From positions 264,069 through 328,068 of the IMG/VR virus record IMGVR_UViG_3300032236_001613: a stretch of DNA of 64,000 bases. One strand, given 5' to 3'. The notes under the pieces are model-generated. The model saw only the letters and a list, made by a program, of their open reading frames with translations, was not told the origin of the DNA and ran no database searches. The position numbers and the translations under genes were made by a program. Below, in pieces: positions 6,411 through 56,200 of this stretch; position 1 is the first letter of the stretch, and the number at the start of each line of letters is the position of its first letter.

Positions 6411-7079
6411 TTAGCTTCCATTAGTTAAACTTTGTATTCTAACTGTATAATCAATCTGTATTAGTCTGTTTAATGCCTTTTGAACCGGATGAAAAATCAC
6501 ATGCGTTAATAACGGTCCAGTATTTTCACCTGCAGGATTATATCCTTTGAGTCCTAATTCATCAAAAACAAAATTGTTTGTATTACTTACACTAGCATCA
6601 AATGCAGGTTGCCCTGCTGGTTCGCCGTAATCTAACAGACAACTTACTAACACATCAGAGTAATACGTGCCTGGTACGTGCCTTACTTCCATAAAATTCC
6701 TTGAAGGATCTAAATCATAAGGATTATTAGCGTCAACAACTTTATAATACGTTTGATTATAAAGAGCTGCATTTGAACCTACATTGTTAGGTGTTAGATA
6801 GGTAATAATACCTGTAGGGTCTATTCTACTACCACCATTACCAAATGCCATTTCTGAAATAAAATTTTGACCCAAATTAGCTACACTATTAGCTAAAGAA
6901 ATAGAAAAGTTTTCGTAATGAATTGCGTTTCTTTTATCTACGAAAATTTCTTTAGTAGTCGGATCGTAAATTTTTATGTGGCCCTGAATACGTAATGCTC
7001 CTGTTTCATTAGGTTTTTCATTAGTTGGCGTTGGTGTTTGCATAAATTTCTTCATATTTTTGTTATTAGAATTGTCCAT
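6411..7079 (-). CDS. Baseplate / tail-fibre attachment structural protein
   Basis: ISEMAFGNGG...FDELGL...LLTHVIFHPVQK...IDYT pattern resembles fibre-anchoring baseplate domains; located in the baseplate operon. Confidence 0.55.
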   Translation of the reverse strand: MDNSNNKNMKKFMQTPTPTNEKPNETGALRIQGHIKIYDPTTKEIFVDKRNAIHYENFSISLANSVANLGQNFISEMAFGNGGSRIDPTGIITYLTPNNVGSNAALYNQTYYKVVDANNPYDLDPSRNFMEVRHVPGTYYSDVLVSCLLDYGEPAGQPAFDASVSNTNNFVFDELGLKGYNPAGENTGPLLTHVIFHPVQKALNRLIQIDYTVRIQSLTNGS

Positions 7080-16000: not shown

Positions 16001-19000
16001 AATAATGTATAATCTTCATTAGGTAGAAGTACACCAGGATTTATAGAAGCTGGGTTAACCGAATCAATTATAATTTCTAATTTATCTTTACTTAAAAATC
16101 CTCCAGCTTTATAACTTAAATTAAAGTTTACTGTAGACAGATCCTGTTTAAGTTCAGATAGATACTTTTTATTTCTCTTTAATCCATTTTCGATTACCCA
16201 AACACTGTAACCAGAGGAAGGAACAGATGATCCTAAATTGTCAATATCAGAATACAACATAACAGTAGCTGGATCAAGGAATAACTTATCGCTGCCGTAT
16301 CTATATTGGCCAGTTGCATTTTTAGACAATCTTATAGGATCAAACATTTTAGCAGCATAATCTGCTGGTTTAGCAAGAGCACAAATTATTTGTACTGCGA
16401 AAGGCCACAGACTGCTACGTCTCCAAGCAGTTTCAACCGGACCGTGATCGCCGTAGACCCAATCGGCATCAGGCGACGGTATGTATCCGTTTTGAGCGAT
16501 TCCTGCCCACTCTCTAACATCAACTACATTACCGCTAGCATCAACAGGAATTACTTGACTTAGCCCCAGACGAATATAAACTGGATCTATTCCTGCTCGA
16601 TCTCCTTGTCTAATTAAGCCTGCTTCGAGATCTTGCCATAAGTTTAAATTTCCTGCGGTGTAAGGAGCCGGCCCATATTCTGATTCCCACCATGATGGTT
16701 TAACACTAAATCCGAGCATTTCCCAAGGATGAGTATTTGGACGGTCAGTATCGAAATAATACTTATAGATACCTCTCCAGTTTCCAGCAGGAAGACTATC
16801 TGCAAAGGTATAATCATATGCTTGCTTAAAGTTATAAGTTTTATGATTATTAACATTATAGTATAAATTTTTTGTAAAATCTAGACCGTAAATAGAACTC
16901 CATTGAGTAAAATCACCTTGAACTAACTTATAAATTTCACTATAAGAATATTCTGATTTTCTAAATACCGAAGGTAGAATTTTATTAATATTAAAAATTT
17001 CTGGATTATAGTTTGCTTTTATGTTGTTGTAAACACGTTTCTCAAATTCAAGCAATGCAATATCTCTATAATCATAATTTCCTTGATCTGCATCCTTTAC
17101 TAATGTATATGCTACAGTTAAACTTCCGTCGTGTCCTTGTATTATCATTACAGGATCGTTAGCATAACTATAATCTTTATATATCTCAGGAACATACTTA
17201 GGATATAATCCTAATTTAGTAGGTGTCGGCGGTACATATGATCCTATTGTTGAAAAATAATCAACAATAGTGATTACATCTTGCACATTTAAAGTAGTAA
17301 TAATTTTTACATTAGGGTTAACAGTATCAAATGTATAATCTCTTCCATATATTAATTGAGTACCGTTAAGATATATTAGTATAGATCTATTCGATGGAGC
17401 TGTAATATCAAATATACTTGTAAGAGGGTAGATAACATTGCGAGAATCAGTCACTGTGTAGGATTTTGAAGTTGAATTGTTACCAAACCCAATCATATCG
17501 CTTTGACTATAAGGAAATGAAGAATTTTTACTGTAGTTTATTAAGTTGATTGCCTGATCTAAAATTTGATCTGTAGTAAGACTCATATCAATCTGAGAGA
17601 TCGAATCAATAAGTTTTAACTTAAATCCATAGTAATCATTAGCTGATGCACGAGTTGCATTAATTAAACTATTTTTTACATCAGTTATAAAAAGTTGAGC
17701 AAAAGATAAAGGATTATTATTGGTAATTAATCTTGTTCCGTATTTTGAAATATCTGGAAGACTCTTTAAATTACTTACACCAGGAAAATAACCAACGAAA
17801 TTAGGTTCTCTCTGCACCATTGTTTGCACATGATCTGAGATTTCACTTAATGTAAACTGATTTATCTCACCGTTTAGTGGATTGTTTGTTAAATTCAATG
17901 GTGTCTCGTAAACCCCTGTACTGTTAGGTGCAGCACTTGAATAGCAATTTAACAATAGATTAGTTGTTGTGCTAAAAGATTTATTAAGTTTTACATTTAA
18001 AACATTTTGCGTTGATGTAAAAACATAATCAGTTGATTCAATTAATTTTATATTATTAGCAAATACTGATACAGTAAGATCACTAATTAATCCGCTGTTA
18101 TCGTAAACTGTTATTGGTACAATAGTAGTATTTGTATCTAAAACTTGGAACTGCTGTACTGCAAGTTTATAAGATTCTCCTTTGACCCATATATTAACAA
18201 GTGCATTATTCTGTTTTAAGTAAGTACTTGATGTCGGAACTGCTGTTACCTGGTTCGTGCTTAATAAAGAGATTGTATCACTACTAAAAAAGTTTTGAAA
18301 CAAGTAAGATCCTTCAACTCCTACATTCATATAGCTTAAAGGAAATCCTAGTACAGGATCGTTTGCACCAGTACCTATTACATAACCAAATAGCTTATTT
18401 CCATTAAAAATAGAATCATAATAATTTTTATTACTATAGCTGTTGCCATCGGCATCAAACAAATCAAAAAGAGGAGCTTGATTTAACTTAGTTCGTTGTT
18501 GAGCTAATACCCATTCCAATCCATTAAACCACAACTCAGTGCCTTGACCTAATGTTCCAGTCGTTATTACAGTAGTGTTTCCAAAAACAGGTTCAACAGA
18601 TTCAACAAGATTTATTTTATAAAATCCGTTGATTGAACTAAATGTAACTTCGAATACTTTTGATTTTACTAAAGGATCTTTATCAGCAGTAAAAATTATT
18701 TTTTGACCCGCAGAAAGTGCAACACCGTCAACAGTATACGAACTCGAGCCTTCGATAGTCTGAAAAACATTGGTAGTTGTTCGATCGATTAAATCGACCG
18801 TCGAAATACTGTTATTTCCAAAATTATATAGTTGTAAATCAGCTTCGAACTCAACGATCGGTCGGCTAGCTCTCATATTAATTGGTAAAACTGGTACAAC
18901 ACCATTTGCTGCGGCTGATACATTAACTACATCAATATGAAACCATCTGTTATATCTAGACCATGGATTTAAATCTCGGCTAGCACGATTAATTGTAACA

Positions 19001-20088
19001 TACTCAGGAGTTAACGGAAGATTTTTAAAATTATCAAACGGATAATCATCAAAAGGAGTTGCATCAAAATCGGCATCATACTGTGTTGCTAAATTTTCAG
19101 GAGTTTGCAATAAATTAAAGTCAATTAACTTAATTGCACTACCTACTCCTTCGACTATAAACTCTTTATTTTGATAATATGACGGTGAAACATTACCTGC
19201 AAATACAATTTTTAATCCATTAATAAATTCTATTCCAGCAGAAGTTTTGTACTGAGCTTTACCAACAATGTCTTCGTCAACATTAATGGATGAATTTTCA
19301 GTAATAACTTTTACTAAGATTGTTCCAGGAACAACTAACCCATCGTCGGAAGTATAATAAATGACACTCGGAACAGTTTCATTAACTGTAAAAATAATCT
19401 GACCGTTACTAACACCTGCTCCGGTTAATGAGCCTAGATTATTTGGTTCGTTATTTGTTTTAATATAAAAATTATGTTTAGAGTTAATATTGAAAACATA
19501 TGTAACTCCTCTATAAAAAGTTAAGATTGGATCTTCGGTTACACCATCTGGAGTAAAAATAAAATAACTGCCATCGGCAGAATCTGTCACAGTATATGTG
19601 CTTACTGTATTTCTTTGTGTGCCGGTAACTGTTATTGAATCTGGACCTAATGGTAACCAATAATACTCTCTAAAATTAACAAACTTATCCCAATCAATAT
19701 GCGGATTGTAGCTATTAACATCAGGCGATAGTAATCTATTATAATCATTTACCGTTGACCCGTAATAACCTAATTGATTGACGAGATCATCGAATCCAAA
19801 TGCGTTCTTAATCGTACCTTCGGTATCGGCTAAAGTTAAAGACGGTTGAAATGGATACTTATTTCGTAATTCCGAAGCATTAATAGTTGAATTTGATATG
19901 TATACATCTGAATTTGAATTATAGTTAGGAGTTAATTTACTTCCAACGAATCCGTTGATTCTTGTTAGCGAGGGTGTTTTATATAATTGGTCAAGAGTAC
20001 TAGATAAAAACTTATTATTTTTTTCAGTTTGAAAATAAGTTGGTAATAGGTTTATTGATTTTCTAGTGTTTTTTGATGATTTATCCAT
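7066..20088 (-). CDS. Giant multidomain baseplate/virion structural protein (4340 aa)
   Basis: 13-kb uninterrupted ORF downstream of the gp6-like gene. Contains FG-GAP-like repeats, two W-x5-Y-x2-G-x-IVKY-x-G-x2-Y modules, GSGYT..P.V.I virion repeats and LNG..L..G.DY repeats. Confidence 0.75.
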   Translation of the reverse strand: MDKSSKNTRKSINLLPTYFQTEKNNKFLSSTLDQLYKTPSLTRINGFVGSKLTPNYNSNSDVYISNSTINASELRNKYPFQPSLTLADTEGTIKNAFGFDDLVNQLGYYGSTVNDYNRLLSPDVNSYNPHIDWDKFVNFREYYWLPLGPDSITVTGTQRNTVSTYTVTDSADGSYFIFTPDGVTEDPILTFYRGVTYVFNINSKHNFYIKTNNEPNNLGSLTGAGVSNGQIIFTVNETVPSVIYYTSDDGLVVPGTILVKVITENSSINVDEDIVGKAQYKTSAGIEFINGLKIVFAGNVSPSYYQNKEFIVEGVGSAIKLIDFNLLQTPENLATQYDADFDATPFDDYPFDNFKNLPLTPEYVTINRASRDLNPWSRYNRWFHIDVVNVSAAANGVVPVLPINMRASRPIVEFEADLQLYNFGNNSISTVDLIDRTTTNVFQTIEGSSSYTVDGVALSAGQKIIFTADKDPLVKSKVFEVTFSSINGFYKINLVESVEPVFGNTTVITTGTLGQGTELWFNGLEWVLAQQRTKLNQAPLFDLFDADGNSYSNKNYYDSIFNGNKLFGYVIGTGANDPVLGFPLSYMNVGVEGSYLFQNFFSSDTISLLSTNQVTAVPTSSTYLKQNNALVNIWVKGESYKLAVQQFQVLDTNTTIVPITVYDNSGLISDLTVSVFANNIKLIESTDYVFTSTQNVLNVKLNKSFSTTTNLLLNCYSSAAPNSTGVYETPLNLTNNPLNGEINQFTLSEISDHVQTMVQREPNFVGYFPGVSNLKSLPDISKYGTRLITNNNPLSFAQLFITDVKNSLINATRASANDYYGFKLKLIDSISQIDMSLTTDQILDQAINLINYSKNSSFPYSQSDMIGFGNNSTSKSYTVTDSRNVIYPLTSIFDITAPSNRSILIYLNGTQLIYGRDYTFDTVNPNVKIITTLNVQDVITIVDYFSTIGSYVPPTPTKLGLYPKYVPEIYKDYSYANDPVMIIQGHDGSLTVAYTLVKDADQGNYDYRDIALLEFEKRVYNNIKANYNPEIFNINKILPSVFRKSEYSYSEIYKLVQGDFTQWSSIYGLDFTKNLYYNVNNHKTYNFKQAYDYTFADSLPAGNWRGIYKYYFDTDRPNTHPWEMLGFSVKPSWWESEYGPAPYTAGNLNLWQDLEAGLIRQGDRAGIDPVYIRLGLSQVIPVDASGNVVDVREWAGIAQNGYIPSPDADWVYGDHGPVETAWRRSSLWPFAVQIICALAKPADYAAKMFDPIRLSKNATGQYRYGSDKLFLDPATVMLYSDIDNLGSSVPSSGYSVWVIENGLKRNKKYLSELKQDLSTVNFNLSYKAGGFLSKDKLEIIIDSVNPASINPGVLLPNEDYTLLFNTSNPIKSVSISGIIIEKGDGYFTVKGYDRQNAFFNINAPRHRNNDSVVNVGGKSSAYLTWTENTYYQSGQIVKYSGVFYTVVNSANSGTSFNTSNYIKLSRLPTVGGATVLSTLDFNSEVTSVPYGTQYKTLQEVYDLIVGYGQWLTNQGFIFNQFNSDLGAVIDWKFSGKEFLYWTTQGWAAGSVITLSPFADTIEYQFTDAVVDNVLDSFYDYSLLKSDGSPYPIKNFTLSRENQVCTIKSFNSPEGIYFARLNLIQKEHVIVMNNKSMFGDIVYDIKTGYRQSRMKLAGFITSDWNGDFLSPGFIYDEAIISDWTNYTDYSVGDIVKYYGKYYSATQNIIGSLNFDYTQWSLLGSAPVAQLLPNFEYKINQFEDFYSLDIDNFDQSQQKMAQHLTGYTPRLYLTNIFVDPIAQYKFYQGFIKEKGTANSIQKLAKASMHNLQGQIEFTEEWAFRIGSYGNFNSYNEIEFPLRESDFRENSQIVKFVDTAPAVPDDINSYITPSDLSIKSQNYNSEMVFETTTSSTYRNNNIILPVAGYVRLDDVTSTIYNKTSLFDIANIGSLNEGDTFWLGFKDNGSWDVYRYTVQNTRVLSSSVTLPSSELTFTTSHKHNLSVGDIVSVYGLDNETDGIYEITRIPSLSSFSVSTTLTSASLPTTVALLFKFESVRVNSFDTIRDLQEKIKFKFGDTIWADNGDGISDKWTVYKKQNNYSKLKEIFNGYQHIHQLFGQSLASRETADVLIIGAPGYYTPATGYGAVFAYNGVKTQNLTPIGLITVNSTLSSTVTNFGYSVSYDMDYSVIVAGAPSANLIQINSIDGTFILDNEVYPGSNARYGSTIYLSQQAVNGNKTLLVGAPGTGTVYAYDLLLDIINVSTTATLTATIIPSYSLSISSSTSTDYQIVGNIAGDRTAIAYADNSTVYVYSADTLLQTINAPSLCTVNDKFGQSIAMSDNGVYLFASSITAKDLTHSPGIVFVYMWNGTQYNLTDYIFNPTDDTDMYFGSTVKTNTHGDLLLVSTIGKQALTTTFDNGLTLFDNETTEFIEYIVNSGSVYSYERKNVNFILANEFQDTASLVSGSGYGHSLAITNGSIFVGAPTTTPNYGVVYEFDKLDLTSNNWSVHRYQDELVDLDKIKRAITIDSFSEKIVDYIDIIDPVKGKIIGIADQEIRYKTAFDPAVYSIGNQGVVVDTNTSWIEDHVGELWWDLSTVKYVWYEQGEIEYRKNAWGSIFPGASIDVYEWVKTEYLPSQWSSLADTTEGLYRGVSGQPKYPDNSIISVKQYYNAETGVTTDVYFYWVKNTVIVPNLLGRKISASDVASIIFNPSSIGNKFLSILSSNSLSVTNIKNDLVSNNIYLNISKDYYNRSINKHTEWMLLSEGDANSMPTTMLNKKLIDSLVGVDSLGNLIPDPSLSDRQKYGIEIRPKQGMFVNRTEALRNAIEYVNGVFSKYLISYSANFRNLNSKEEIPDVYSREYDLLLSDYDSLTSLVVVDKKDAALSCSITNGKITSINIDNPGYGFGALLPVGLDIYGNAISWAGPNVEIIPGNNDLVSNASIKTLINQNGEIISVEIENPGSVFTVAPTLLVRPYTVIVESDINSNNLWAKYELSNKKWIKRHTQDYDTTQYWSYVDWTSTNYDPLKPLITVPEPYALETVTVSLGDYVKVLNQGNGRYIILQRVNGNGTYDNDYDLVLSEKGTIQLSSSLWNTKDNWYNFDYHYTYDQTLYDQTPERPLLNILTALKDDIFVGSLKIYWNYFFFKAVKYALSEQKFLDWAFKTTFINVKNLAGSLDQRHVYKFQNSEYYENYIKEVKPYHTKIRNYQVNYDVVESTNSYITDFDSPSYYDKGSNSFISVVEGDALLSTYPWKSWYDNYKLFVESAVVSSHGSGYTSVPTVEIITAPGDTGSGATAEALISLGKVTSIKITNSGSGYTKTPSIVILGGGSTLLVPATAYARMANGKVRTNTIGLKFDRITVNNEISNQRVTESFKGDNRTYNFPLSWAAENKKANIEVTLYNTTSTGHRILATEYSIDTYKKVVNGYHKLFSNIVLNSIPSTGTTLVISYNKNIELFHAVDRIQNYYSPTVGMPGNDLAQLMSGVEFPGSQIQGLEFDYTTNWDMAPFGKSLYGDDSNFYTTATVITTAATGTDTLVVNTLQGITAGLRVTTVALTTLTTNNNKFLSSNVVVTGINTLSNSVIFSTSTADQIISNTVRLEFWEYNTTPGVLDTILDGGNLSYTTAAGVNPSDTIIDADKFVSIYTSYAPEEQIKGEMYESVGISVYTRAESGSPMITQSVIQINQTVTNTIVALPMLPPNTASTMVYYNDTVLTYGRDYTIDFINQDVIVNPQPITGILGVSVIGVGGYQFNYYDYANGSNVTALSVHVGTINEIGSIYATLNGRRLSTTEYTLSRGRLYVSNLALGNYTLQAWSFTSGGNKFSTVNEQTFVGDGVTTSYLLTIYPGKHGSANSQAIVEINNRRLMSPSTVYYSVSAGETAFLIDPANNYPPGTFDLAHLEVYVNGIKLRNGIDFVLDQDSNQILFKPGFLQTGDAMAITNHTFSDYYFANGYVYIKPTANYQVNDLLKVIDFTDGDTSLIREETYLSRPSGKYPLTRKLLNSRYIWVTIGNSPLINTVDFYLDDTGTMVVLREDYPYIPNQLVSIMSMSDNTIEKNSVGYRVFTDLLGRNQFKRISKGNTTYLAETLYSTSTKIVVQDGSVLAEPNLAKKIPGAVLIDGEWIEYLTINGNELSDLRRGSLGTGPKDAYLVGTAVIDQSYKQNAPYQETFVKQKLTATNAISYVINGTLLTTATAADQLLVYYGGKLLRKAGIYKQNTDISYDSGDINLLGTTSTTSTLVLTKFVNDAYLVTSTNQVWVYTNSKLTNAVNGYIYSGLDYYPEEFTISGIVSNGSISTATLTLNLPNIKTGTEIMLVQRLAINNMYRNTGTSVLNDNSLFSTFLQDNPSTFPDKYYYGQF
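7085..7090 (-). promoter_or_regulatory. Putative late promoter TAAATA, 5 nt before the ATG at 7079
   Basis: Minus strand reads GATAAATATTACTATG; matches the core of the T4 gp55 promoter TATAAATA. Confidence 0.6.
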
Positions 20089-31116: not shown

Positions 31117-32034
31117 ATGACAATAACAATAACACCCACCGGAAGAAAGGTAAAATATTTAAACAATAGAGACTTATTAGCAGAAATCCATAGAAGTAAA
31201 TGTAGTTATTCTAGCTTTTCTAGCCCCGAATATAATCAATACGACATCATATTAACTAGCCTCGATAAGATTAATATAAGAACAATAGCCGAAGCAAAAC
31301 GTAATAGAGCTAAAAGATTAGGTCTTGAAGCATTTAATTTAGCAAGGATTGGCGGAGATAAAAAGATTAAACTTACAGACTGCACTCCTGATTATAAAAC
31401 CATTGCTAAAAATGATATTATTATTAGAATAATGACTTTTGATCACATTCCACTTTCCCCAAATCGTAAAAAGACTGCTAAAACTACTGCAGATCGTCAT
31501 GAGAAGGTAAATTTTCCTCCTTTTCAACACTGGAAGTTTAATGATAACGACGAATTAGAGTGCGTAGGTAAAAGTCATTGGAAAGGCACATTAGATAACG
31601 GCAAGTTTAGTAAAGATCACGGAAGAATTACAGAAAATCTAGGCAGAATGTATATCAAATTAAGCGAGAGATATGCACAACGTAGTAACTGGAGAGGTTA
31701 TACTTACGTTGACGAAATGCGTGGCCAAGCAATTCTGCAGTTAAGCCAAATTGGATTACAGTTTGACGAATCAAAAAGCGAAAACCCATTCGCATATTAC
31801 ACAGCAGCAGTAACTAATTCGTTTACTCGTGTACTTAATCTAGAGAAAAAGAGCCAAAATATTAGAGACGATTTACTCGAAGTTAACGGACTGACCCCAA
31901 GCCTAACTCGTCAAACACGGGATGAATTTGCTGACGAAACTGCAAAGCAAGCAGAAATTTACAAAAATACTCGCATGCCAAAAAGTAACGAAAGCGATTT
32001 TGCTTCAGAGGACGACTCATCAGAAAACGATTGA
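31117..32034 (+). CDS. gp55: Late-transcription sigma factor, T4 gp55-like
   Basis: YLNNRDLLAEI; ITENLG.M..KL.ERY..R.NWRGYTY.DEM; FDESKSENPFAYYT....NSF; gene order 55-47-46 as in T4. Confidence 0.85.
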   Translation: MTITITPTGRKVKYLNNRDLLAEIHRSKCSYSSFSSPEYNQYDIILTSLDKINIRTIAEAKRNRAKRLGLEAFNLARIGGDKKIKLTDCTPDYKTIAKNDIIIRIMTFDHIPLSPNRKKTAKTTADRHEKVNFPPFQHWKFNDNDELECVGKSHWKGTLDNGKFSKDHGRITENLGRMYIKLSERYAQRSNWRGYTYVDEMRGQAILQLSQIGLQFDESKSENPFAYYTAAVTNSFTRVLNLEKKSQNIRDDLLEVNGLTPSLTRQTRDEFADETAKQAEIYKNTRMPKSNESDFASEDDSSEND

Positions 32035-34878: not shown

Positions 34879-35159
34879 TAAACAAGTATATAGAATTACA
34901 TAATGAACTTATTGATCTTTTAGTAACTTATCATAATGCTCATCTAAACTTTATTAAACGACCTTCTGCTTACAGTATGGATCCTGTAATTAGAACAACA
35001 GCAAAGATATCTAGAGCATTAAGAGAAATAAAACGTTACAATAGAATATTGAGACCAGTTTTATTAGATCAAAAAAGAAAGCATGTAGAAAATAAAAGAG
35101 CCAAAAAGGAGGCAAGAAAAAATGAGCGACTCAACAGAACAAATGAAAACCGCACTTAA
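34875..35159 (+). CDS. Hypothetical basic helical protein
   Basis: ATGA-coupled to gp46; Lys/Arg-rich C-terminus. Confidence 0.6.
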   Translation: MINKYIELHNELIDLLVTYHNAHLNFIKRPSAYSMDPVIRTTAKISRALREIKRYNRILRPVLLDQKRKHVENKRAKKEARKNERLNRTNENRT

Positions 35160-35319
35160 CAGTTACCTAGCCGAGAATGACAAGTTTGTCGGTGGAAATT
35201 CAGCAGCAGGAACTCGTGCTCGCAAGGCATTAGCTGAACTCGGTAAGTTAGTTAAGGCACGTCGTAATGAAATTACAGCAGAAAAGAATGCTCGCAAGGC
35301 GTCTAAGTCTGCATCGTAA
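35122..35319 (+). CDS. Small basic protein resembling the histone H1-like (Hc1-type) family
   Basis: GNSAAGTRARKALAELGKLVKARRNEI motif; AGGAGG RBS upstream. Confidence 0.7.
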   Translation: MSDSTEQMKTALNSYLAENDKFVGGNSAAGTRARKALAELGKLVKARRNEITAEKNARKASKSAS

Positions 35320-35322
35320 ACA

Positions 35323-35748
35323 GTGACTTGGTTCTATCAAGAACAAATTGTTACTGAACTGCCCGAAGATTGTGTTGGATTTATATATCTTATTACTAAT
35401 ACAATCTCGGGCCGTATGTACGTCGGAAAAAAATTGGCTAAGTTTAGTAAAACCAAATATAAAACAGTAAAACTTAAAAACGGCAACAAGAAAAGAAAAA
35501 AAATTAAGAGCAAAATAGATTCAGATTGGCAAACATATTATGGCTCCAGTGATGAACTATCAAAAGATATAGAAAAATTAGGCAAAGAAAACTTTCGAAG
35601 AGAAATATTACATTACTGTACTAGTAAGGCACAAACATCATATCTCGAAGCAAAAGAACAATTCGACCGTCGTGTGTTAGAAACCAATGAATATTACAAT
35701 GGTCACATACGTGTTAGAATCCATGGCTCACATATAATCAAAAAATAG
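35323..35748 (+). CDS. Minimal GIY-YIG (Seg-like) endonuclease domain protein
   Basis: GFIYLITN...GRMYVGKK, YYGSS, ENFRREIL, LEAKEQ, YYN; GTG start; no appended DNA-binding domain. Confidence 0.85.
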   Translation: MTWFYQEQIVTELPEDCVGFIYLITNTISGRMYVGKKLAKFSKTKYKTVKLKNGNKKRKKIKSKIDSDWQTYYGSSDELSKDIEKLGKENFRREILHYCTSKAQTSYLEAKEQFDRRVLETNEYYNGHIRVRIHGSHIIKK

Positions 35749-36939: not shown

Positions 36940-37158
36940 TTAGAAGAAAGGTAGTCCACTTTCCTTAGTAGTTTCTAAGTTGTTTTCGATGATCTTACTA
37001 ATAACCGATCGATCCTGATAGTCTAGCTGATATGCTTCGGTAATAGTTACACCACCACGCATAAACCAGCAAATTCTAAATAGTTCATCTTTAATGGCCT
37101 TTGTTTCTTTTTCTAAGTCTTGTGATAACTGGTCAATTTCATTAAGACTAAGAGACAA
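36940..37158 (-). CDS. gp51-like baseplate hub / tail assembly chaperone, probably the -1 frameshift extension of the upstream ORF
   Basis: ELFRICWFMRGGVT.TEAYQL...DR..I pattern; only a TTG start with no well-spaced RBS; frame stays open back through the slippery site. Confidence 0.7.
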   Translation of the reverse strand: MSLSLNEIDQLSQDLEKETKAIKDELFRICWFMRGGVTITEAYQLDYQDRSVISKIIENNLETTKESGLPFF

Positions 37159-37163
37159 AAGCC

Positions 37164-38024
37164 TTACCCGAAAAAAGTTGCAGGATCGAATACAATAGGA
37201 ATCTCAATATCAGCAGTTGATCCAAGTGCAATCATTTCTTCAGATGCTTGAACTCGTAAAGGTTTGATAGAATTTTGTTCTCTTAGAAGATCTATATGAT
37301 CTTTAATAATGTTAAACATACTTCTGTCACAGTTTTCTATAAATTCTTTTATAAATTCTTGATCAGTTACTACTCCTGATGTAGTTTCAATAGCTACTAT
37401 AGAATCAGTAATTACATTTAGTGTAAGGTCAGTTAATTTATTAAAGCTCTTTTTAAATAATTCAGTTTTTTCTTCCTCGCTTAACTCATTATCGTTAACT
37501 AAATTAAAAATTCTTTGAGTTTCAAATGTTTGGCTAGCAGCTTGAGATAACTTTTTATAATTTAATGGGCGTACATGTACTTTTAAATTTGTAGATATTT
37601 CAATTAACTCGTTCCATTTAACATTAGAATATAAGCTATCGATAATTTGTTTTAAATCTACAGAATATGCAGCTTCGATACCTTTAACTGTTACATTAGC
37701 ATCCATTTTTTCGCCATAAGTAGCTAATCTTATTGCTACTAAAATAATATCTAAATCAATTTGGGGACATTCCCATGCATTTATTACATTAGGTAAACAA
37801 CTTTGTATAACATCAACTACAGCCTGTCCGTTTAATAGTGCATCAGGAGTTTTTAAAATTAACTCATCTTTAGCAGTCATGGAATAAACCGGGTATTCAC
37901 CATTTGCGCTAACATTTAAAGATCCTTCAGGCCAATAATTTCCGTTACTTGGAAACCGAATATAAATCTTTGGTTGCCTCATCATGCCCATTAAGGGATT
38001 GATTTTTTGAGGGGAATTTTGCAT
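37164..38024 (-). CDS. gp26-like baseplate hub subunit / tail assembly chaperone
   Basis: RQPKIYIRFPS.G, MTAKDELILK, IQSC, DLDIILVAIRLATYGE motifs. Confidence 0.75.
   Translation of the reverse strand: MQNSPQKINPLMGMMRQPKIYIRFPSNGNYWPEGSLNVSANGEYPVYSMTAKDELILKTPDALLNGQAVVDVIQSCLPNVINAWECPQIDLDIILVAIRLATYGEKMDANVTVKGIEAAYSVDLKQIIDSLYSNVKWNELIEISTNLKVHVRPLNYKKLSQAASQTFETQRIFNLVNDNELSEEEKTELFKKSFNKLTDLTLNVITDSIVAIETTSGVVTDQEFIKEFIENCDRSMFNIIKDHIDLLREQNSIKPLRVQASEEMIALGSTADIEIPIVFDPATFFG
37170..37176 (-). other. Putative programmed -1 ribosomal frameshift site (T TTT TTC)
   Basis: In-frame X XXY YYZ heptamer one codon before the stop; the -1 frame is the 36940-37158 ORF. Confidence 0.7.
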
Positions 38025-38036
38025 ATGTTAGACTCC

Positions 38037-38098: not shown

Positions 38099-40216
38099 AT
38101 GGCACCAGTATCGGGTACATTCGGAGATCAACAAGTAAATCTTGAAAATGCAGCTACAGAAGCTACATTACAAAAATTACTAGTTGCTATTACCGCAACT
38201 AGCAAAGAAGCTGCGGATGCTGTTGCTAAAATGGCAAAAAATGCTGGATTAGATCCAGAAAAAGTTAAACTTACAACAGCGTCTTTAACTGAATTAGAAA
38301 AATCTGCTGCTATTTTAGGTGGTGCATATGCTGGGTTAGAATACGCCAGTGATCAGTTAAAAGCTAAATTAACAGCCGCTGCAGGTCTTGTTGGTACTTT
38401 TACTTCTGGTACTGGCAAAGCTAGTGATTTATTTGGAGCTTTAGGAAAATTACCTGGACCTTTAGGCCTTGTCGGTACAGGATTTCAATTAGTATCTCAG
38501 TTTCAAGAACAACTTTTAAAAAGTTATCAAGAAATAAGTGCTTCGGGTGTTAATTTTAGCGGTAGTCTTATACAAATGCGAGTAGCTGCATCTAGCATGT
38601 ACTTGTCAATGGACCAGTTTAGTACTTTAGTAAAAAAGAATTCTGAATCATTTATTAATCTCGGCGGTGGAGTTGATAAGGGATTTCAAACTTTTTCTAG
38701 ATTAAGCAATAATTTGATTAATAGTCAACTAGGTGATCGTTTACTATCGTTAGGATATAGTTTTGAAGAAATAAATCAAGGATTAGCTAGCTATATCGGA
38801 ATGAGTGGACCACGTAGGGCCATAGACTTAGCTGATGAAAAAACTAAAGCAGCAATACTTACATCGTCGTCTGAATACTTAGAAAATTTAAATGCATTAT
38901 CTGAAATTACTGGTAAAAGTCGAGACAAACAGCAAGAAGAGCTAGATGCTGCTAGTAAAAATGCTGCTTTTCAAGCTAAACTAGCAACTATGTCGGAGGA
39001 CGAACGTAAAAAAGCATTAGCAGGAATGGCAAATGCATTAGCAATCGGTGGAAAAGGTGCTGTTGATGCGTTCCAATCTAAGTTAATGGGAATAGCACCA
39101 GATAAAGCCGGTGCCTTATTCCTTGCTACTGCAAGTAATGCAGCAAGAGTAGTTGAAGATTCTGTTGATATGGTTTATAATACTAGTATTGGTGTAAAAC
39201 AAATGGCTAGTACTACATTAAGAGAAGGGCTCAAAGCTGCTGGTCTTGATTTTCAAAAATTTTCTAATCAAACATTATATGCAATTATAAGACAAGGCGG
39301 ACCACTCGCTGATAGCTTACAGCAATTAGGGATTACAGCAAACAAAGCATCTACTATGACTGAAGAGCAAATACAGCAGATAATTGATAAAGCTGATGCC
39401 GATAGTAATGCTGCTGCCGAAGCTAGAGAAGCAGCCGAAAATCAAAAAGAAATTATGAAGATGGGACAAGAGTTATTAAAAGATTTAATGCCTATTTTCC
39501 GTGATTTAAAACCTTTAATACCTGGATTTTTAAGAAGTGTTACAGATATGATAGGGTTAATTAATAAAATTCCTGGTGGTTTAACAACATTGCTCGAAGC
39601 TATCGTAGCATTTTCTATTGGATCGAATGTGCTTAAAGGAGCATCTGCAGTTAAAAGTCTTATAAACGCCGGAGGTGCTGCTGCTGCTATTGGAAAAGAA
39701 GTTCCGGTTCTTACCGAAGCAGTTACTGCCGGTAAGGTTGCAACTAGCGCCGCTACCGGTACCGGGTTATTGGCTAAAGGCTCTGCTAAGTTGGGCGGTA
39801 AAATGCTATCTAAATTCATACCTGGTATTGGATTACTTGCTGGCGGAGCTGATGCCTATATGAGATTAGGAGAAGGAGATTATTTTGGAGCAGGACTAGC
39901 AGCAGCAGGAGGACTTGCCTCGTTAATACCCGGTGTTGGCGGAATAGTAGCAGCTGGATTTGACGTAGCAAATTTAGCAAGAGACTTGCATAAAAAGTCT
40001 GACGATAATAAAAAAGAAGAAAAATCCAAAAAAGATGATGCAAGCATACTTGATAATAAGGATGACGATATTAATAAAGAATTAATAACCGAATTAAAAC
40101 GGTTAAATACAATATCCGAAAATATGCTGCATACAATGCAACTAGTATCAAACGATATGAAACGCAGTGTTAGTGCTATTAATGGGTTAAACAAAAATTT
40201 ATATCCTGTGAGTTAA
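38099..40216 (+). CDS. Tape-measure-like protein
   Basis: Ala/Leu/Gly/Lys-rich and helical in composition, with Gly-rich hydrophobic C-terminal segments (IPGIGLLAGG...LIPGVGGIVAAG); adjacent to the chaperone pair. Confidence 0.6.
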   Translation: MAPVSGTFGDQQVNLENAATEATLQKLLVAITATSKEAADAVAKMAKNAGLDPEKVKLTTASLTELEKSAAILGGAYAGLEYASDQLKAKLTAAAGLVGTFTSGTGKASDLFGALGKLPGPLGLVGTGFQLVSQFQEQLLKSYQEISASGVNFSGSLIQMRVAASSMYLSMDQFSTLVKKNSESFINLGGGVDKGFQTFSRLSNNLINSQLGDRLLSLGYSFEEINQGLASYIGMSGPRRAIDLADEKTKAAILTSSSEYLENLNALSEITGKSRDKQQEELDAASKNAAFQAKLATMSEDERKKALAGMANALAIGGKGAVDAFQSKLMGIAPDKAGALFLATASNAARVVEDSVDMVYNTSIGVKQMASTTLREGLKAAGLDFQKFSNQTLYAIIRQGGPLADSLQQLGITANKASTMTEEQIQQIIDKADADSNAAAEAREAAENQKEIMKMGQELLKDLMPIFRDLKPLIPGFLRSVTDMIGLINKIPGGLTTLLEAIVAFSIGSNVLKGASAVKSLINAGGAAAAIGKEVPVLTEAVTAGKVATSAATGTGLLAKGSAKLGGKMLSKFIPGIGLLAGGADAYMRLGEGDYFGAGLAAAGGLASLIPGVGGIVAAGFDVANLARDLHKKSDDNKKEEKSKKDDASILDNKDDDINKELITELKRLNTISENMLHTMQLVSNDMKRSVSAINGLNKNLYPVS

Positions 40217-50242: not shown

Positions 50243-53200
50243 ATGGCTATTGGTCGTATATCTGGTCCATTACTGGCCAAAAATCTAATACGCGATGGCG
50301 TAGATTTAGCATTCGAAACAGATCTCCTATATCTTGATGTAACGACTGGTAGAATAGGTATTCGTAAAAGCAATCCTGCCTACGAATTAGATGTCAACGG
50401 AACGATTAATGCTAATAATTTAAAAGTTGTTTATACTGGTCCTGGAACCGGGCAGAGTCAATTAGGCAACTTAATTATATCTACAGGAACCATTAGTACA
50501 ACAGTAGGCCCGATTGCTTTACAACCGAGTGGTAATGAATCGATTAACTTAGTCGGTAATACAAATGTATTTGGGAACTTGCACGCGACCGGAAACATAA
50601 CCGCCGATGGTAACATTACATTAGGAAATAATACAGCAACTGATGTAGTTGTTTTTGAATCAGAAATCGGTTCAAACATTACTCCATCTGTTGACAACGG
50701 ATTTTCTATAGGCAGTATCGAACGTAACTGGTTAAATGCTTACGTATCAAATCTTGTTACTAACGAAATTAGTAGTACTGGTACAATTAATATTAATGCT
50801 GGTAGCGATTTATTACAAATTAACTCAGAAATTAGAGTAACTGGTAAAAATCCGATTGGTACTTCGCCTGTTATTACAAACGTTCTTCACGTTAATTTAG
50901 ACGGAAACGACACTAATGACGGTAGAGCTGCAGATCCAAGTCGAGCATGTCGCACGATTACTGGAGCAACACGCAGTCCTTATTACCGACCTGGAACACT
51001 AATTAAAGTATATAGCGGACATTATTTAGAAAACAATCCTATTTTATTACAACCAAATACAGCGGTTGTTGGCGACGATTTAAGAACAACTAGTATCGAA
51101 CCAATTAATAAAACTCAAGATTTGTTCCATGTGCAGAGCGGATGCTACCTTGCACAAATGCAATTCTTTAATGGAAGAAGCGGTCTTTTACCTGGACCAT
51201 ATGTTAATGGTACTAATAGAGGAGCATATTGCACAGCTTTTCCGCCTCAAGTTAATGGAGCAAAAATTGATCTTTATCAATCTCCTTATGTACAGAATTG
51301 TACAAATCAGAGCGGACCTTGGTTGGTTGACGGAACAATGTTTGTTCCTAACCAAACTGTGCAGGTTCCACAAGCAGTTGGTATAGCACAGTTTAGTGCA
51401 AACACAACAACAATCACTGTTACATTAACAAATGGTTCAATCGAACCAGGATTAAATGTTATTAGCGGGCCACAAGATCCGGGATTTTTTAATGCTAGAA
51501 CATTGATGCTATCTAACATCACGTTCATTCAAGAACAAGTAGTTGCATTTGTTAATCAACAAGTAGCTAATGCATTACCTGGATCACCTTTTTATCAATT
51601 TACATATAATCAAGCAAAATGCTATCGAGATGTTGGATTAATTGTACAAAATATTGCTTACGATGTTACGTTTGGTGGCAACGAAAAAGCAGTTGAGGCT
51701 GGATTATCATATTGGAACGGAGTTGTTAATTATATCGAAGGTCAACAAGTTCAAACCACTGATGCGATAAATTATATCGGTGAGTTATCTCAGTCAATAA
51801 TTGTAAATCAAGTTGCTCCAGTTATTACTACCGGAACAGCTCAGATTATTAATACTGCGCTCATCGGCGGAGGAATCGCTAGCGATGAAATTACAAATGC
51901 TATTAACATTATTACAACAATTATTAACAAAGGACCATCTTCTGCACCGACTGTCTTTAATAGTTGCGGTCCAGAAGCTCCATTGGTTAGTGCTGAACTA
52001 TTATTACAAGCCAATAGAAATTTCCTGCAGAACGAAGTAGTAGCGTATGTAAATTCAACATATCCTAATTTTGTTTATAAACAAGATTATTGCTTTAGAG
52101 ATACTGGATTAATTGTTGATGCTGTAAGTCAAGATATTATTGTTGGAGGCAATACAAAAAGTATTGAATGTGGATTAAGTTACTTTACTGGTGGCAAAGG
52201 CGACAGTAGCGTTGCTGAAACTGCTATTATTAATAATATTAATTTAATCAAAAATATAATACTGAATGGCCCTAGTGTTGCTCCACCGCCAATTGTTGGT
52301 CCAAATCTCGGCGGTGGATACTCGAACGCACAAGATATCTTAAAGAAAAATTTATTATTTGTACAAAGCGAAGTAAGCGCATATGTACGCAGCTTGTTCA
52401 ATAGCAATTTTAGATTAACGCAAAAGCAACAAAATTTATGCTACAGAGATATTGGTACTATATTAACTGCTATTGCCGACGATGTGGCAGCAGGCGGAAA
52501 TATTAATACATTAAATTCAGCATTATCATATTATAGTAATGGTTTAATTATTCTGCCAGGAAATCAACCCGCCGAGACATTAAAGTCGCTTGATTATTTG
52601 CAATATCTAGCAGTGAACATTGTTAAAAATAAAAAATTAACTAATTTATATCAAAACTATATTAAACAAGCGACCAATCCAGTTGTTGGAAATGCAAATC
52701 AAATTATTTCTATTGGATCAAATATTGATCGAATTATCGATATTATTAATAATGGTCCAACAACTATTATTAACGGTAGCCCAGTTATTCCAAGTCCTAT
52801 TGGCTTAATAGCAAGCGGCGATGCAGCAACACAAACTTCAGCTACATTATTACATGCAAACCGTTATTTTATACAATCAGAAATTGTTGCCTATATTGAT
52901 AATGTTATAAACAATGGCAGCGGTTATTATCAAAATTACAGCAGATCTAAATGCCTTAGAGATACAGGACTAATTGTTGACGCACTTGTACAAGATTTAT
53001 TATTTGGAGGTACAAGTCAAACTGACTTTGCTGGATTACAATATTGGAATCAAAACGGTTATACTGGTCAGATAACAGTTGAATTAACAGAAACTATTAA
53101 TGCGATAAATTACCTTTCATATCTTGCACAACAGATTGTGCAAAATATAACTAGTGGAACAAGATATACTGCAACATATCATCCGAGTGGTCCGACTGCT

Positions 53201-56200
53201 CATTCTCAGAACACTAGCTTAACTTCTGCAACTTCTGCCGAAGCAGCGATTATTTCTAGTGAATTTACAGTTATTACAAATATCTTAAACAACGGAACCG
53301 CAGGAGTAACAGATATCATTGTTCCTAACGGAATTGTAACTGGAACTGGTAATATTACTAGTGCTGTAAAACTATTACAAGCAAATAAAATTTATATTCA
53401 GGAGCAAGTTGTAGGATTTGTTGAAGCTACAAAACCAGGAGGATTTACATACGATCAATCTAAATGTTATCGTGACGCAGGATATATGGTCGATAGTGTT
53501 TGCTTTGATTTACTTTATGGTGGAAACAGACAAGCTGTTCAAAGCGGAGTTTATTATTATGCGTTTTCCTCAACCGGTGCTGCAATTGCTGACTCAGAAA
53601 AGTCTCAAACAACTGCAGCTTACAACTATATTAAAACATTAGTTTCGTATATTGTTAAAGGAAGCGCAGTACCGTCTCTGTATCAAACAGCAGTACAGCA
53701 AGTACTTCCTGGCTCTGTTGGTACATCAATTGAATCAGAGAAGATAAATGCTAATCTTGATTTAATTACTGATATTATTACAGTAGGACCAGGAATAGCT
53801 CCACCACCAATTCCGATTAGCAATCAGTTAACTTATAACTATAACGAAATTAATGCGTTTAATTTATTAACATCAAATAAAGATTTCTTAGCGGCAGAGC
53901 TAACTGGATGGATAGATGACACATTTAGTGTAGGGTTTAACTACAATGCAAACAATTGTCATAGAGATACCGGATTAATAGTTGATAGTATCGCGTTTGA
54001 CCTTTTACAACAAGATAACAGCCAGGCAATTTTTGCCGGATTACAGTATTGGAATCAAGCAGGATATACCGGAGCAATCGGAAAAGAACTAACAACAACT
54101 ACTGCCGCCATTAATTATGCAAAATGGTTAGCACAAAAAGTTGTAGTTAATTCCACAGTAACAAATTTACAAACAGGCACTACGCAGACTTTTAATTTTG
54201 CATCACCGGGATCGACTACTGCTAGTACAATTATTGGTAACCTTTTCTCTACTGTTACTAACATTTTGATTAACGGAACTACTGGAGTTACAAATCAAAT
54301 TGTTCCAAATACTACTGCAACAACTAATACAGCAACTTATAACGCTTATAATTTATTACAGGCAAATAAGAAATTTATTGAAGAAGAAGTTATTGCATTT
54401 GTTGATAATAACCTGTCTCAATATTATTATGATAAGACTAAATGTTCGAGAGACACAGGATTAATTATTGATGCTATTGCACTTGATTTGTTATATAACG
54501 GAACTAGTCAAAGCGATTTTGCTGGTCTACAGTATTGGAACCAATCTGGATACACCGGACAGATTACTGTTGAACTAGATCAAACAGTTTCTGCAATTAA
54601 TTTTGCTAGCTCTCTTGCACAACAAGTAGTACAAAATATTACTGCTGGTGTAAGATTTACCCCGACATATTATTTAGGAGGTACTCCAACTGCACAGACT
54701 ACTGGAACTGCAGCTACTTCAGCTGAAGCCGGAATTATTGCAACTGATTTTTCTGTAATCACTAACATTTTAATTAACGGAACAGCCGGAGTTACTGATA
54801 TTATAGTACCAAACGGTTACAGTGCAATCGGAGGAACTGTCGGTAATGCATATGCATTGCTAACTGCTAATAAGACCTTTATTCAGGAACAAACTGTTGC
54901 ATATGTTGAAACAAATAAACCATCGTGGTTTGTTTATAATACTGCTACATGTTACCGTGATGTCGGATATATCATCGATAGTATTAGATTTGATTTAAAA
55001 TATGGTGGCAACAAACAAGCAGTTCACAGTGGAGTCTACTACTATTCATTCTCGTCTTCGAGTAGTGCAATAGCACCTACTGAGAAAAATCAGATAACTG
55101 CTGCTTATAATTATATAAAAACATTAGTCGGATACATTGTAACAAATCAGACAGTTCCGGCACCGTATCAAACTACTGTTGTACAGAGTAAGCAAGGAGT
55201 AATCGCAACTAGTGCAGAAGTAACAGCACTAGATAATAATATTAATCGTATTACTACAATTATTAATAACGGCCCAAATACTACTATTAATGGATCGACG
55301 ATTACTCCAACTCCGATTAATTTATCCTTTAATCCTACACTTAATTCTCAGCATGCAGTTGCACAATTATCAGCCAATAGAGATTTTATAAGAGCAGAAG
55401 TTATTGCATACCTTGATTACTTTATTACTACACAAGCTAAACCGGTTTTTGTATACGACCAAGTTAAGTGCGAAAGAGACGTTGGGTTGATTGTCGATGC
55501 ATTAGCTCAAGATTTATTGTTTAATGGAACTAGTCAAAGTAATTTCTCTGGATCTCAATACTGGGCGCAAAGCGGATATACTGGAGCTATCGGCTCAGAG
55601 TTAACTACTACTACGTCAGCAATTAATTACATTAGAGATCTAGCAGTTAAAGTCATTAAGAACGATACAACAGGTTTAAGATACCAGTCAAACGTATCTC
55701 AATTTACTAATACCTCTATTGTTGTAACTACTACTGAACAACAAAAAGTTTATGACGAGTTTAACCTGATTGTTGATATAATTCTTAATGGAACTGCTAA
55801 TGTTACTGATAGAATTGTACCAAATAATTTATTTGCAAGTTCGATTTTATCTGTACAAGGTGCGTATACATTATTAGAAAATAATAAATCATACCTACAA
55901 GCAGAAGCAGTTGCATTTGTTGAAACAACAAAGACATACGGATTTGTTTACGATCAAACTAAATGTAGACGAGACATTGGCTATATGGTTGATAGCGTAA
56001 GCTTTGATTTACTATACGGTGGAAATAGACAAGCTATTCAAAGCGGTGTTTATTATTATGGATTTAGTAACATAACTGCTGTACCAAACGAGCAAGTGCA
56101 AGTTACAGCCGCATATAATTTCATAAAGAATATAAGTTCTTACATTATAACTGGTCAAAGAATTCCAGCACAATACCAAAATAACATAAGTCAAGTAACA

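Follow-up and report, generated by a model that had tools for sequence, protein, structure and literature searches.

A probable programmed -1 frameshift in a gp26/gp51-family tail-assembly gene of a jumbo phage

In phage T4, baseplate-hub assembly involves the products of two separate genes, 26 and 51, which belong to one protein family. We asked whether a jumbo phage that carries a single gene of this family, followed by a short open reading frame (ORF) in a different frame, makes both forms from one gene. The DNA analyzed was a 64,000-nt stretch (hereafter, the window) covering positions 264,069 to 328,068 of IMG/VR record IMGVR_UViG_3300032236_001613. An initial annotation, made from the sequence alone, had proposed that a lambda G/GT-style -1 frameshift joins a 286-aa gp26-like ORF to a 72-aa gp51-like ORF beside a tape-measure-like gene, and that the products are G/GT-equivalent chaperones. 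Each sequence feature it described was confirmed on re-examination. Its interpretation was supported, although the correspondence to gp26 and gp51 needs refining and the functional equivalence to G/GT is still an inference.

A slippery heptamer and a -1 reading frame on the minus strand

The minus strand reads GAT CCT GCA ACT TTT TTC GGG TAA at the end of the 286-aa ORF, and the locus comprises the following features.

37164..38024 (-): 0-frame ORF of 286 aa, the short product, a member of the gp26/gp51 family (PF12322, phrog_150) and the counterpart of T4 gp26
38033..38036 (-): GGAG Shine-Dalgarno sequence, 8 nt upstream of the ATG at 38024-38022
37170..37176 (-): slippery heptamer T_TTT_TTC in X_XXY_YYZ phase, the proposed site of the tandem -1 slip by tRNA-Phe
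37164..37169 (-): 6-nt spacer GGGTAA, containing the 0-frame stop TAA (37166-37164)
37152..37163 (-): 5' arm (GGCTTTTGTCTC) of a putative stimulatory RNA stem
37096..37107 (-): 3' arm (GAAACAAAGGCC) of the same putative stem
36940..37170 (-): -1 frame extension of 76 codons, from CGG at 37170 to the stop TAA at 36942-36940, forming the predicted helical C-terminal domain of the long product
36940..38024 (-): transframe coding sequence, 38024..37170 joined to 37170..36940, encoding a 361-aa long product, the counterpart of T4 gp51
38099..40216 (+): divergently transcribed 705-aa tape-measure-like gene, the presumed client of the chaperone pair, followed by the portal gene

The last 72 codons of the extension form the separately called ORF (37158..36940), whose only early start is a TTG; its first ATG is at codon 38 counted from the heptamer. 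The fusion built in silico is 361 aa and reads ...PATFFRVRLLSLSLNEID...GLPFF. The 286-aa ORF scores 32.2 bits against the PF12322 profile (cut-off 24.5; E = 1.1e-7) and matches phrog_150 (E = 7.1e-14), and a six-frame search of the 328-kb genome, which also passed the cut-off, found no other PF12322 gene. Its AlphaFold2 (AF2) model (pLDDT 91.5) matches 59 BFVD models named baseplate hub or hub assembly protein at E ≤ 1e-3, with top hits at TM 0.81–0.86 (best hit, TM 0.85), and so has the same predicted fold as other family members. The extension is modeled as three helices (pLDDT 86.9). The neighboring 705-aa product was assigned as tape-measure-like because a feature-based search placed it nearest to named clusters of tape measure proteins (score 0.93, a lead only), the RaK2 homolog is annotated as TMP-like, and the PA5oct and CBB homologs were found in virions by mass spectrometry.

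Conservation of the signal and of the extension among relatives

The heptamer alone is not unusual in this AT-rich window, where TTTTTTC occurs 19 times against 26.8 expected, and its significance comes from comparison. A conserved slippery heptamer with a -1 overlap in homologs had been named in advance as the test of the proposal, and it was fully positive. All 181 related loci examined, comprising 96 of 96 in the jumbo clade (24–57% amino acid identity), 80 of 80 in the Kyanoviridae-like clade and 5 of 5 named T4-like phages from other groups (S-PM2, KVP40, Cr30, RHph_I46 and pf16), carry T_TTT_TTN in the same phase, followed by a -1 ORF of 59–82 codons; SCTP-2, RAS14 and Melnitz carry it as well. 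The heptamer was thus present in every gp26-like locus examined outside the T-even type and Immutovirus, the latter having a +1 variant. Its last base varies (C, A, T, G) while the T6 run does not, and the preceding codon is always NNT across eight different codons, although its amino acid varies and codons for those amino acids end in T only 56–64% of the time within the same ORFs. In 84 of 96 jumbo-clade loci the 0-frame stop lies two codons after the heptamer. None of the best 150 representative proteins carries an in-frame C-terminal extension, and a contig from an independent metagenome sample spans the site without any indel.

A different relative frame with an independent start codon and ribosome-binding site in homologs had been set beforehand as grounds for rejecting the proposal, and neither a conserved start nor a conserved ribosome-binding site was found in the extension. 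The first possible start codon (ATG, GTG or TTG) ranges from codon 3 to codon 38 of the -1 ORF, and PA5oct has none. In contrast, the extension is conserved as protein from the first residue after the slip, including the peptide FFRxRLL, which lies upstream of any start codon.

A putative stimulatory RNA stem begins 6 nt after the heptamer. RNAalifold returned no single consensus over all 74 aligned junctions, because subclades pair in different registers, and we therefore tested a named stem (columns 14–25 with 70–81 of our alignment A2). Ten of its 12 pairs show compensatory changes, 76% of cells are paired compared with 32–49% when the partner is slid, and 0 of 500 shuffles reached the observed score. 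The window itself forms 11 of 12 pairs and its minimum free energy fold contains this helix, but that fold is not significant on its own (z = -1.6). The same helix gave z-scores of -6.1 and -3.5 in Atu_ph07 and Phosso, respectively, whereas single-sequence folds of RaK2-like and PA5oct junctions were not significant and RaK2-like relatives show no clear stem. An analogous stem in the Kyanoviridae-like clade shows compensation at synonymous sites.

Correspondence to T4 gp26 and gp51

PF12322 contains both T4 gp26 and T4 gp51, and the comparisons indicate that gp51 corresponds to the whole transframe fusion rather than to the 72-aa ORF alone, which corresponds only to the Gp51_C end of gp51, a match that is weak for this jumbo clade when the extension is tested on its own. 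T4 gp51 (249 aa) matches PF12322 over its full length and covers phrog_150 positions 13–280, T4 gp26 (208 aa) covers positions 14–235, and in Melnitz the 0-frame product covers 5–232 and the extension 231–277. T4 gp51 aligns with the Melnitz fusion in a single HSP across the junction, while gp26 ends three residues after the same FF motif, like the short product. Profile–profile alignment (hhalign) of jumbo fusions against Kyanoviridae-type fusions gave Prob 98.1, and of Kyanoviridae-type fusions against the T4 gp51 family Prob 98.9, both running across the junction. The jumbo fusion compared directly with the T-even gp26 and gp51 families gave only weak matches, and the link had to go through the Kyanoviridae-type fusions.

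Whether the long form of the window carries the Gp51_C domain (PF28602, phrog_634) was left undecided by these comparisons. The fusion alignment runs through the extension, but the extension on its own gave only E = 0.015 against the correct gp51 region, and against a single T4 gp51 sequence it picked an N-terminal segment at Prob 4.8%, which we regard as spurious. Searches of the extension against a copy of Pfam without PF28602, PHROGs and NCBIfam returned no hit, a PDB profile search found nothing, its close homolog has no Pfam hit on record, and a Foldseek search of BFVD with the extension model found nothing significant apart from the truncated Atu_ph07 ORF. In S-PM2, by comparison, T_TTT_TTC lies three codons before the gp26 stop and is followed by a 62-codon -1 ORF. 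The cyanophage extension belongs to phrog_634/Gp51_C and is recognizably gp51-like, whereas the jumbo-clade extension has diverged.

T-even-type phages provide a natural control. T4 and four other T-even-type loci carry two family genes (26 and 51) and encode the FF motif as TTC TTT, TTC TTA or TTA TTG, with no heptamer, T4 itself using TTC TTT. The window's genome, KVP40, S-PM2, PA5oct and 121Q each have one family gene plus the heptamer.

Proposed mechanism, alternatives and related systems

We propose, with good confidence, that one gene makes two proteins sharing an N-terminus. In this view, most ribosomes translate the 286-aa ORF and stop at TAA, while a fraction pause over U_UUU_UUC, probably helped by the RNA stem and by the stop codon two codons after the heptamer; both tRNA-Phe then slip back one base and translation continues for 76 codons, yielding a 361-aa protein with an extra three-helix C-terminal domain. 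The short form would correspond to T4 gp26 and the long form to T4 gp51, which T-even phages have hard-wired as two paralogous genes. By inference, both proteins are non-virion assembly factors for the central hub, tape measure and tail-tube initiation complex, working in a fixed ratio as lambda G/GT or P2 E/E+E' do. Our analysis demonstrates the signal, its conservation, the coding nature of the extension, the RNA covariation and the homology to gp26 and gp51, whereas actual slippage and its efficiency, and the chaperone role and its partners, are inferred; no junction peptide, reporter assay or ribosome profiling is available for this or any relative.

Other origins of the two-frame layout appear unlikely. 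Current GenBank records annotate the extension as a separate gene ('gp51 baseplate hub assembly catalyst' or 'hypothetical protein'), gene callers call a separate ORF in most records, and in the window a TTG preceded by AAGG lies 5 nt after the stop, which could permit its own initiation or termination-reinitiation. However, the AAGG-to-TTG spacing is only 3 nt, and the variable or missing start codons, the conserved peptide before them, the invariant T6 run with its NNT codon, and the in-frame fusion of the equivalent segment in T4 gp51 make this reading very unlikely. Transcriptional slippage, in which RNA polymerase adds one U on the T6 run, would give the same -1 reading, as expected from slippage on A/T runs, but is also improbable: the run is kept at exactly six T in 94 of 96 jumbo-clade loci (Z = C) rather than lengthened as efficient transcriptional slippage would favor, it is always in X_XXY_YYZ phase, and a covarying stem lies downstream with the classical 6-nt spacer. 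No RNA sequencing run contained the window, so U7 transcripts were not examined. A chance overlap or an assembly error in a continuous gene might be suspected, since TTTTTTC is common in the window and homopolymer runs are prone to indel errors, but it is refuted by the 181 loci, which include finished genomes of cultured phages, and by the independent contig and the lack of in-frame extensions.

A real frameshift with a different function is the least unlikely of the alternatives, although we consider it doubtful. Some older genetic and biochemical work on T4 places gp26 in the hub as a structural subunit (PMC3004832), GenBank labels CBB_250 a 'structural protein', and we detected no sequence or fold similarity to known tail assembly chaperones (TACs): no TAC family was found in Pfam, PHROGs or NCBIfam, and the structural comparison suggested at the outset gave nothing at E ≤ 0.001 in a Foldseek search of the PDB with the 286-aa model (HK97 TAC 2ob9 ranked 34th at E = 0.65) and only generic helical hairpins in a wide VIA-align search. 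On the other hand, the same review lists gp26 and gp51 as hub assembly chaperones and states that gp51 is absent from the particle, the CBB virion mass-spectrometry table lists the TMP-like CBB_251 with 29 peptides but not CBB_250 or CBB_249, and the PA5oct record gives a mass-spectrometry note for the TMP-like protein and the portal but not for the gp26-like protein. This evidence on virion content and on a requirement in hub assembly is indirect, and neither was measured here. Binding of the short form to the tape measure and of the extension to the tube protein was likewise not assayed, and a complex prediction with the 705-aa and 286-aa proteins gave no answer (score 0.00), which is not evidence either way. 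Gene order is tube-gp26-extension-(small ORF)-TMP in KVP40, pf16 and immuto, which places the gene in the canonical chaperone slot between tube and tape measure, and gp26-extension-(small ORF)-TMP in Cr30. In the window the gene adjoins the TMP-like gene but is divergent from it and has no tube gene beside it, so that position gives no clear answer for this locus.

Frameshifted tail assembly chaperones are a hallmark of long-tailed phages, but none has been recognized for T4-type tails, and the roles of T4 gp26 and gp51 have stayed obscure for decades. We found no description of a gp26/gp51 frameshift in the literature, although the searchable part is limited, and a 2016 recoding review mentions no T4-like, cyanophage or baseplate case (PMC5009743). 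A broader reading, which we consider somewhat more likely than not, is that the frameshift is the ancestral and near-universal state across the T4 superfamily, being present in RaK2-, PA5oct- and Atu_ph07-like jumbo phages, Kyanoviridae cyanophages and pelagiphages, KVP40, and Rhizobium, Caulobacter and Pseudomonas T4-likes, and that the T-even lineage replaced it by duplicating the gene into gene 26 (short form) and gene 51 (long form). On this reading, gp26/gp51 is the so far unrecognized chaperone pair of T4-type tails, and hundreds of database genomes mis-annotate the extension as an independent 'gp51' or leave it out; the cyanophage-type extension alone is found in 578 records. The locus and its relatives link the two problems, offer a testable model for how the hub, tape measure and tube-initiation complex is built and a defined signal (heptamer, 6-nt spacer and covarying stem), and would be a natural example of a frameshift being swapped for a gene duplication.

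The conserved -1 site near the 3' end with a downstream ORF lacking its own start is shared with frameshifted chaperones of the lambda G/GT type (the Xu-Hendrix-Duda class), as judged by comparison alone. In lambda, a -1 frameshift near the 3' end of a gene beside the tape measure gene yields a short and a long protein with a common N-terminus, in a ratio set by the frameshift, and neither is expected in the virion (PMC5009743). The protein family and fold of lambda gpG/gpGT are unrelated to those found here, the short form of the window is about twice as large, the slippery site is U_UUU_UUC rather than G_GGA_AAG, and the gene is divergent from the tape measure gene rather than upstream of it. 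Phage P2 is a myovirus with the order sheath-tube-chaperone-TMP, and its E+E' extension lacks its own start and is reached by a -1 slip on the T-rich heptamer TTTTTTG; a higher frameshift efficiency has been noted in P2-like phages (PMC5009743). There is no detectable homology to the P2 proteins, which are much smaller, and no relation of these to the T4-type hub genes is known. T4 differs in using two divergent paralogous genes without a frameshift, and it also makes gp26' from an internal start.

The gp26-like gene and its genomic setting

We first examined the initial annotation's observation of a slippery heptamer at which a gp26-like ORF and a small downstream ORF could be joined by a -1 frameshift, and this observation is confirmed. 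The minus strand of the window reads GAT CCT GCA ACT TTT TTC GGG TAA at the end of a 286-aa ORF, and from the heptamer T_TTT_TTC in this stretch the -1 frame stays open for 78 codons. ORF finding reports that frame as a 72-aa ORF with a TTG start. While the upstream gene has a good GGAG-N8-ATG start, the small ORF has only AAGG-N3-TTG. Built in silico, the fusion is 361 aa and reads ...PATFFRVRLLSLSLNEID...GLPFF. The heptamer alone carries no weight here, since TTTTTTC occurs 19 times in this AT-rich window against 26.8 expected by chance. The features of the locus are as follows.

38069-38063, minus strand: ATAAATA motif about 40 nt upstream of the gp26-like ATG, a possible T4-type late promoter
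38024..37164, minus strand: 286-aa gp26-like ORF
37176..37170, minus strand: heptamer T_TTT_TTC in X_XXY_YYZ phase
37163-37152 with 37107-37096, minus strand: arms of the putative RNA stem
36942..36940, minus strand: stop codon that closes the -1 frame

The window is the end of a 328-kb, about 92% complete IMG/VR virus record, whose closest cultured relatives are the jumbo myoviruses Atu_ph07, Phosso, PA5oct and the RaK2/121Q/GAP32/CBB group. The 286-aa protein passes the curated cut-off of PF12322 (T4_baseplate) and matches phrog_150, 'baseplate hub'. Its AlphaFold model is confident (pLDDT 91.5) and matches 59 BFVD models named baseplate hub or hub assembly protein, with top TM scores of 0.81-0.86, whereas structure searches found no match in the PDB. 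The protein and its close IMG/VR relatives lack four cysteines (CPxC ... CxxC, apparently a zinc ribbon) that most homologues have; T4 gp26 has them, and T4 gp51 has a comparable pair (CPKC ... CC).

Across a short intergenic gap, transcribed divergently, lies a gene for a 705-aa protein whose nearest named clusters are tape measure proteins, followed by the T4-type portal, the prohead protease and the major head protein. Two giant ORFs of 4340 aa (7066-20088, minus strand) and 3845 aa (50243-61780, plus strand) were not examined. A 141-aa GIY-YIG (SegE-like) homing-endonuclease-type ORF (35323-35748, plus strand) and a 65-aa Hc1-like, lysine-rich histone-like ORF (35122-35319, plus strand) lie between the Rad50-like gene and the gp26-like gene; these assignments come from the Pfam hits of the corresponding genes in L183, the locus around a 76%-identical gp26-like protein. 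A T4 gp55-type late sigma factor (phrog_12791, E 8e-86) is encoded at 31117-32031 (plus strand).

Conservation of the heptamer and of a putative downstream RNA stem

The initial annotation had named conservation of the heptamer and of the -1 overlap in homologues as a test of its proposal, and we carried out this comparison. In 96 of 96 homologous loci from GenBank phages and IMG/VR (24-57% aa identity), the gp26-like ORF carries T_TTT_TTC (94 loci) or T_TTT_TTT (2 loci) in the same phase, at the invariant FF motif. The 0-frame stop follows 2 to 12 codons after the heptamer, and a -1 ORF of 72-81 codons follows. SCTP-2 and RAS14 show the same arrangement. The codon before the TTT is always NNT (AAT, ACT, AGT, GAT, CAT, GCT, CGT, TCT) although the amino acid varies; within the same ORFs, codons for those amino acids end in T only 56% of the time, and Phe is TTT only 80% of the time. 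The first possible start codon of the -1 ORF lies anywhere from codon 3 to codon 38, and PA5oct has none, yet the peptide right after the slip, FFRxRLL, is conserved. None of the best 150 cluster representatives of the family carries the extension in frame, and a contig from another sample spans the site without an indel. The GenBank records of PA5oct (locus L003, 3831-4058) and RaK2 (locus L014, 2328-2549) leave the conserved -1 extension unannotated, and that of Atu_ph07 (locus L001, 3816-4052) annotates only its last 40 codons.

In an ungapped alignment of 74 junctions, a 12-bp stem (columns 14-25 with 70-81) starts 6 nt after the heptamer. Of its cells, 76% are paired, against 32-49% when the partner is slid by 1-3 columns; 10 of 12 pairs show compensatory changes, and no shuffle out of 500 reaches the observed covariation score. 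In the window 11 of 12 pairs form, and the helix appears in the MFE fold, although that fold is not significant on its own (z -1.6). RNAalifold found no overall consensus because some subclades pair the same 5' arm with a different 3' partner, and RaK2-like phages show no clear stem. In Atu_ph07 and Phosso, the same helix gives z-scores of -6.1 and -3.5.

A weak hit led us to a wider clade, beginning with Methylophilales phage Melnitz (Kyanoviridae), whose gp26-like gene ends AGT TTT TTT TAA and in which the tail of a 68-codon -1 ORF is annotated 'baseplate hub assembly'. In 80 of 80 IMG/VR relatives the heptamer is T_TTT_TTN (C 28, A 28, T 23, G 1), 1-2 codons before the stop. A tblastn search with the extension found 578 phage records, mostly cyanophages, where it is annotated 'gp51 baseplate hub assembly catalyst', which is the source of the gp51 label. 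S-PM2, KVP40, Cr30, Rhizobium phage RHph_I46 and Pseudomonas phage pf16 all have the heptamer and a 59-67-codon -1 ORF. This clade also has a long-range stem with a 6-nt spacer (CCCTCTC pairing with GAGAGGG): in locus L100 (2543-2680) and the Kyanoviridae-like loci L103-L182, a stem CCCTCTC(CC)/(GG)GAGAGGG joins the ALSH codons and the PWERE codons of the cyanophage-type extension, with CG-to-UA compensation at two synonymous positions.

A different arrangement was seen in Flavobacterium phage vB_FspM_immuto_2-6A (locus L099, 2638-2960), where the gp26-like ORF has no X_XXY_YYZ heptamer and the homologous extension (..GGYSFETVYEFPIWLRKYI..) lies in the +1 frame. A candidate +1 shift at AGC TTT CTT TGG (UUU_C) would restore the SFFG motif.

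Relation to T4 genes 26 and 51

T4 gp51 (249 aa) matches PF12322 over its full length (E 4e-52) and covers phrog_150 positions 13-280, whereas T4 gp26 (208 aa) covers positions 14-235. The Melnitz 0-frame product covers 5-232, and its extension covers 231-277 and also matches phrog_634. gp51 and gp26 are detectably similar to each other (BLASTP E 2e-6), and gp51 aligns with the Melnitz fusion in a single HSP that crosses the shift site. In profile-profile comparisons, Kyanoviridae-type fusions against the gp51 family gave Prob 98.9 (E 1.6e-17) and jumbo fusions against Kyanoviridae-type fusions gave Prob 98.1 (E 7e-14), with both alignments running through the junction, although the jumbo extension alone hit the correct gp51 C-terminal region only weakly (E 0.015). 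T-even gp51 proteins carry PF12322 plus PF28602 (Gp51_C), and T4 gp26 ends ...EFFELL, three residues after the FF motif, exactly like the short product. Thus, the short product corresponds to gp26 and the long product to gp51. T4 additionally makes gp26' from an internal start (gene 26', locus L018, 2303-2590), so that the T4 gp26/gp51 family yields three nested or paralogous products; whether gp26' has a counterpart in the frameshifting phages is not known.

The T-even phages provide a natural control. In T4 and four diverged T-even-type contigs, gene 26 sits divergently next to gene 51, the FF motif is encoded TTC TTT, TTC TTA or TTA TTG, and there is no in-frame slippery heptamer. T4 has two PF12322 genes, while KVP40, S-PM2, PA5oct, 121Q and the window's genome each have one. 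Within this sample the pattern is perfect, one gene occurring with the heptamer and two genes without it. KVP40 belongs to Straboviridae and has the one-gene state, from which we infer that the duplication is probably the derived condition.

Inferred function and novelty

The extension is predicted with confidence to be a small three-helix domain (pLDDT 86.9). Gene order is tube-gp26-extension-(small ORF)-tape measure in KVP40 and pf16, sheath-tube-gp26-like-extension-tape measure in immuto, and gp26-extension-(small ORF)-tape measure in Cr30, which is the canonical chaperone slot. A review of the T4 tail lists gp26 and gp51 as hub assembly chaperones and states that gp51 is not in the particle, but also notes conflicting reports that gp26 is a hub subunit (PMC3004832). 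The mass-spectrometry table of the CBB virion lists the tape-measure-like CBB_251 (29 peptides) but not CBB_250 or CBB_249, and the PA5oct record carries mass-spectrometry notes for the tape-measure-like protein and the portal but not for the gp26-like protein.

The initial annotation's interpretation is strongly supported by comparative evidence as regards the frameshift itself, which we consider very likely, while its further proposal of a G/GT-like chaperone role we regard as only somewhat more likely than not. The observations above fit a G/GT-like division of labour, but this is an inference: the family has no sequence or fold similarity to known chaperones, and binding was not assayed. 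A -1 PRF in a tail assembly gene is an established mechanism. What appears to be new is the protein family, its breadth across the T4 superfamily, and the frameshift-versus-duplication relationship with T4 genes 26 and 51. Full-text literature searches and the 2016 recoding review gave no description of a gp26/gp51 frameshift, although the literature searched was incomplete and an earlier description cannot be excluded. All GenBank records inspected annotate two separate ORFs or omit the extension.
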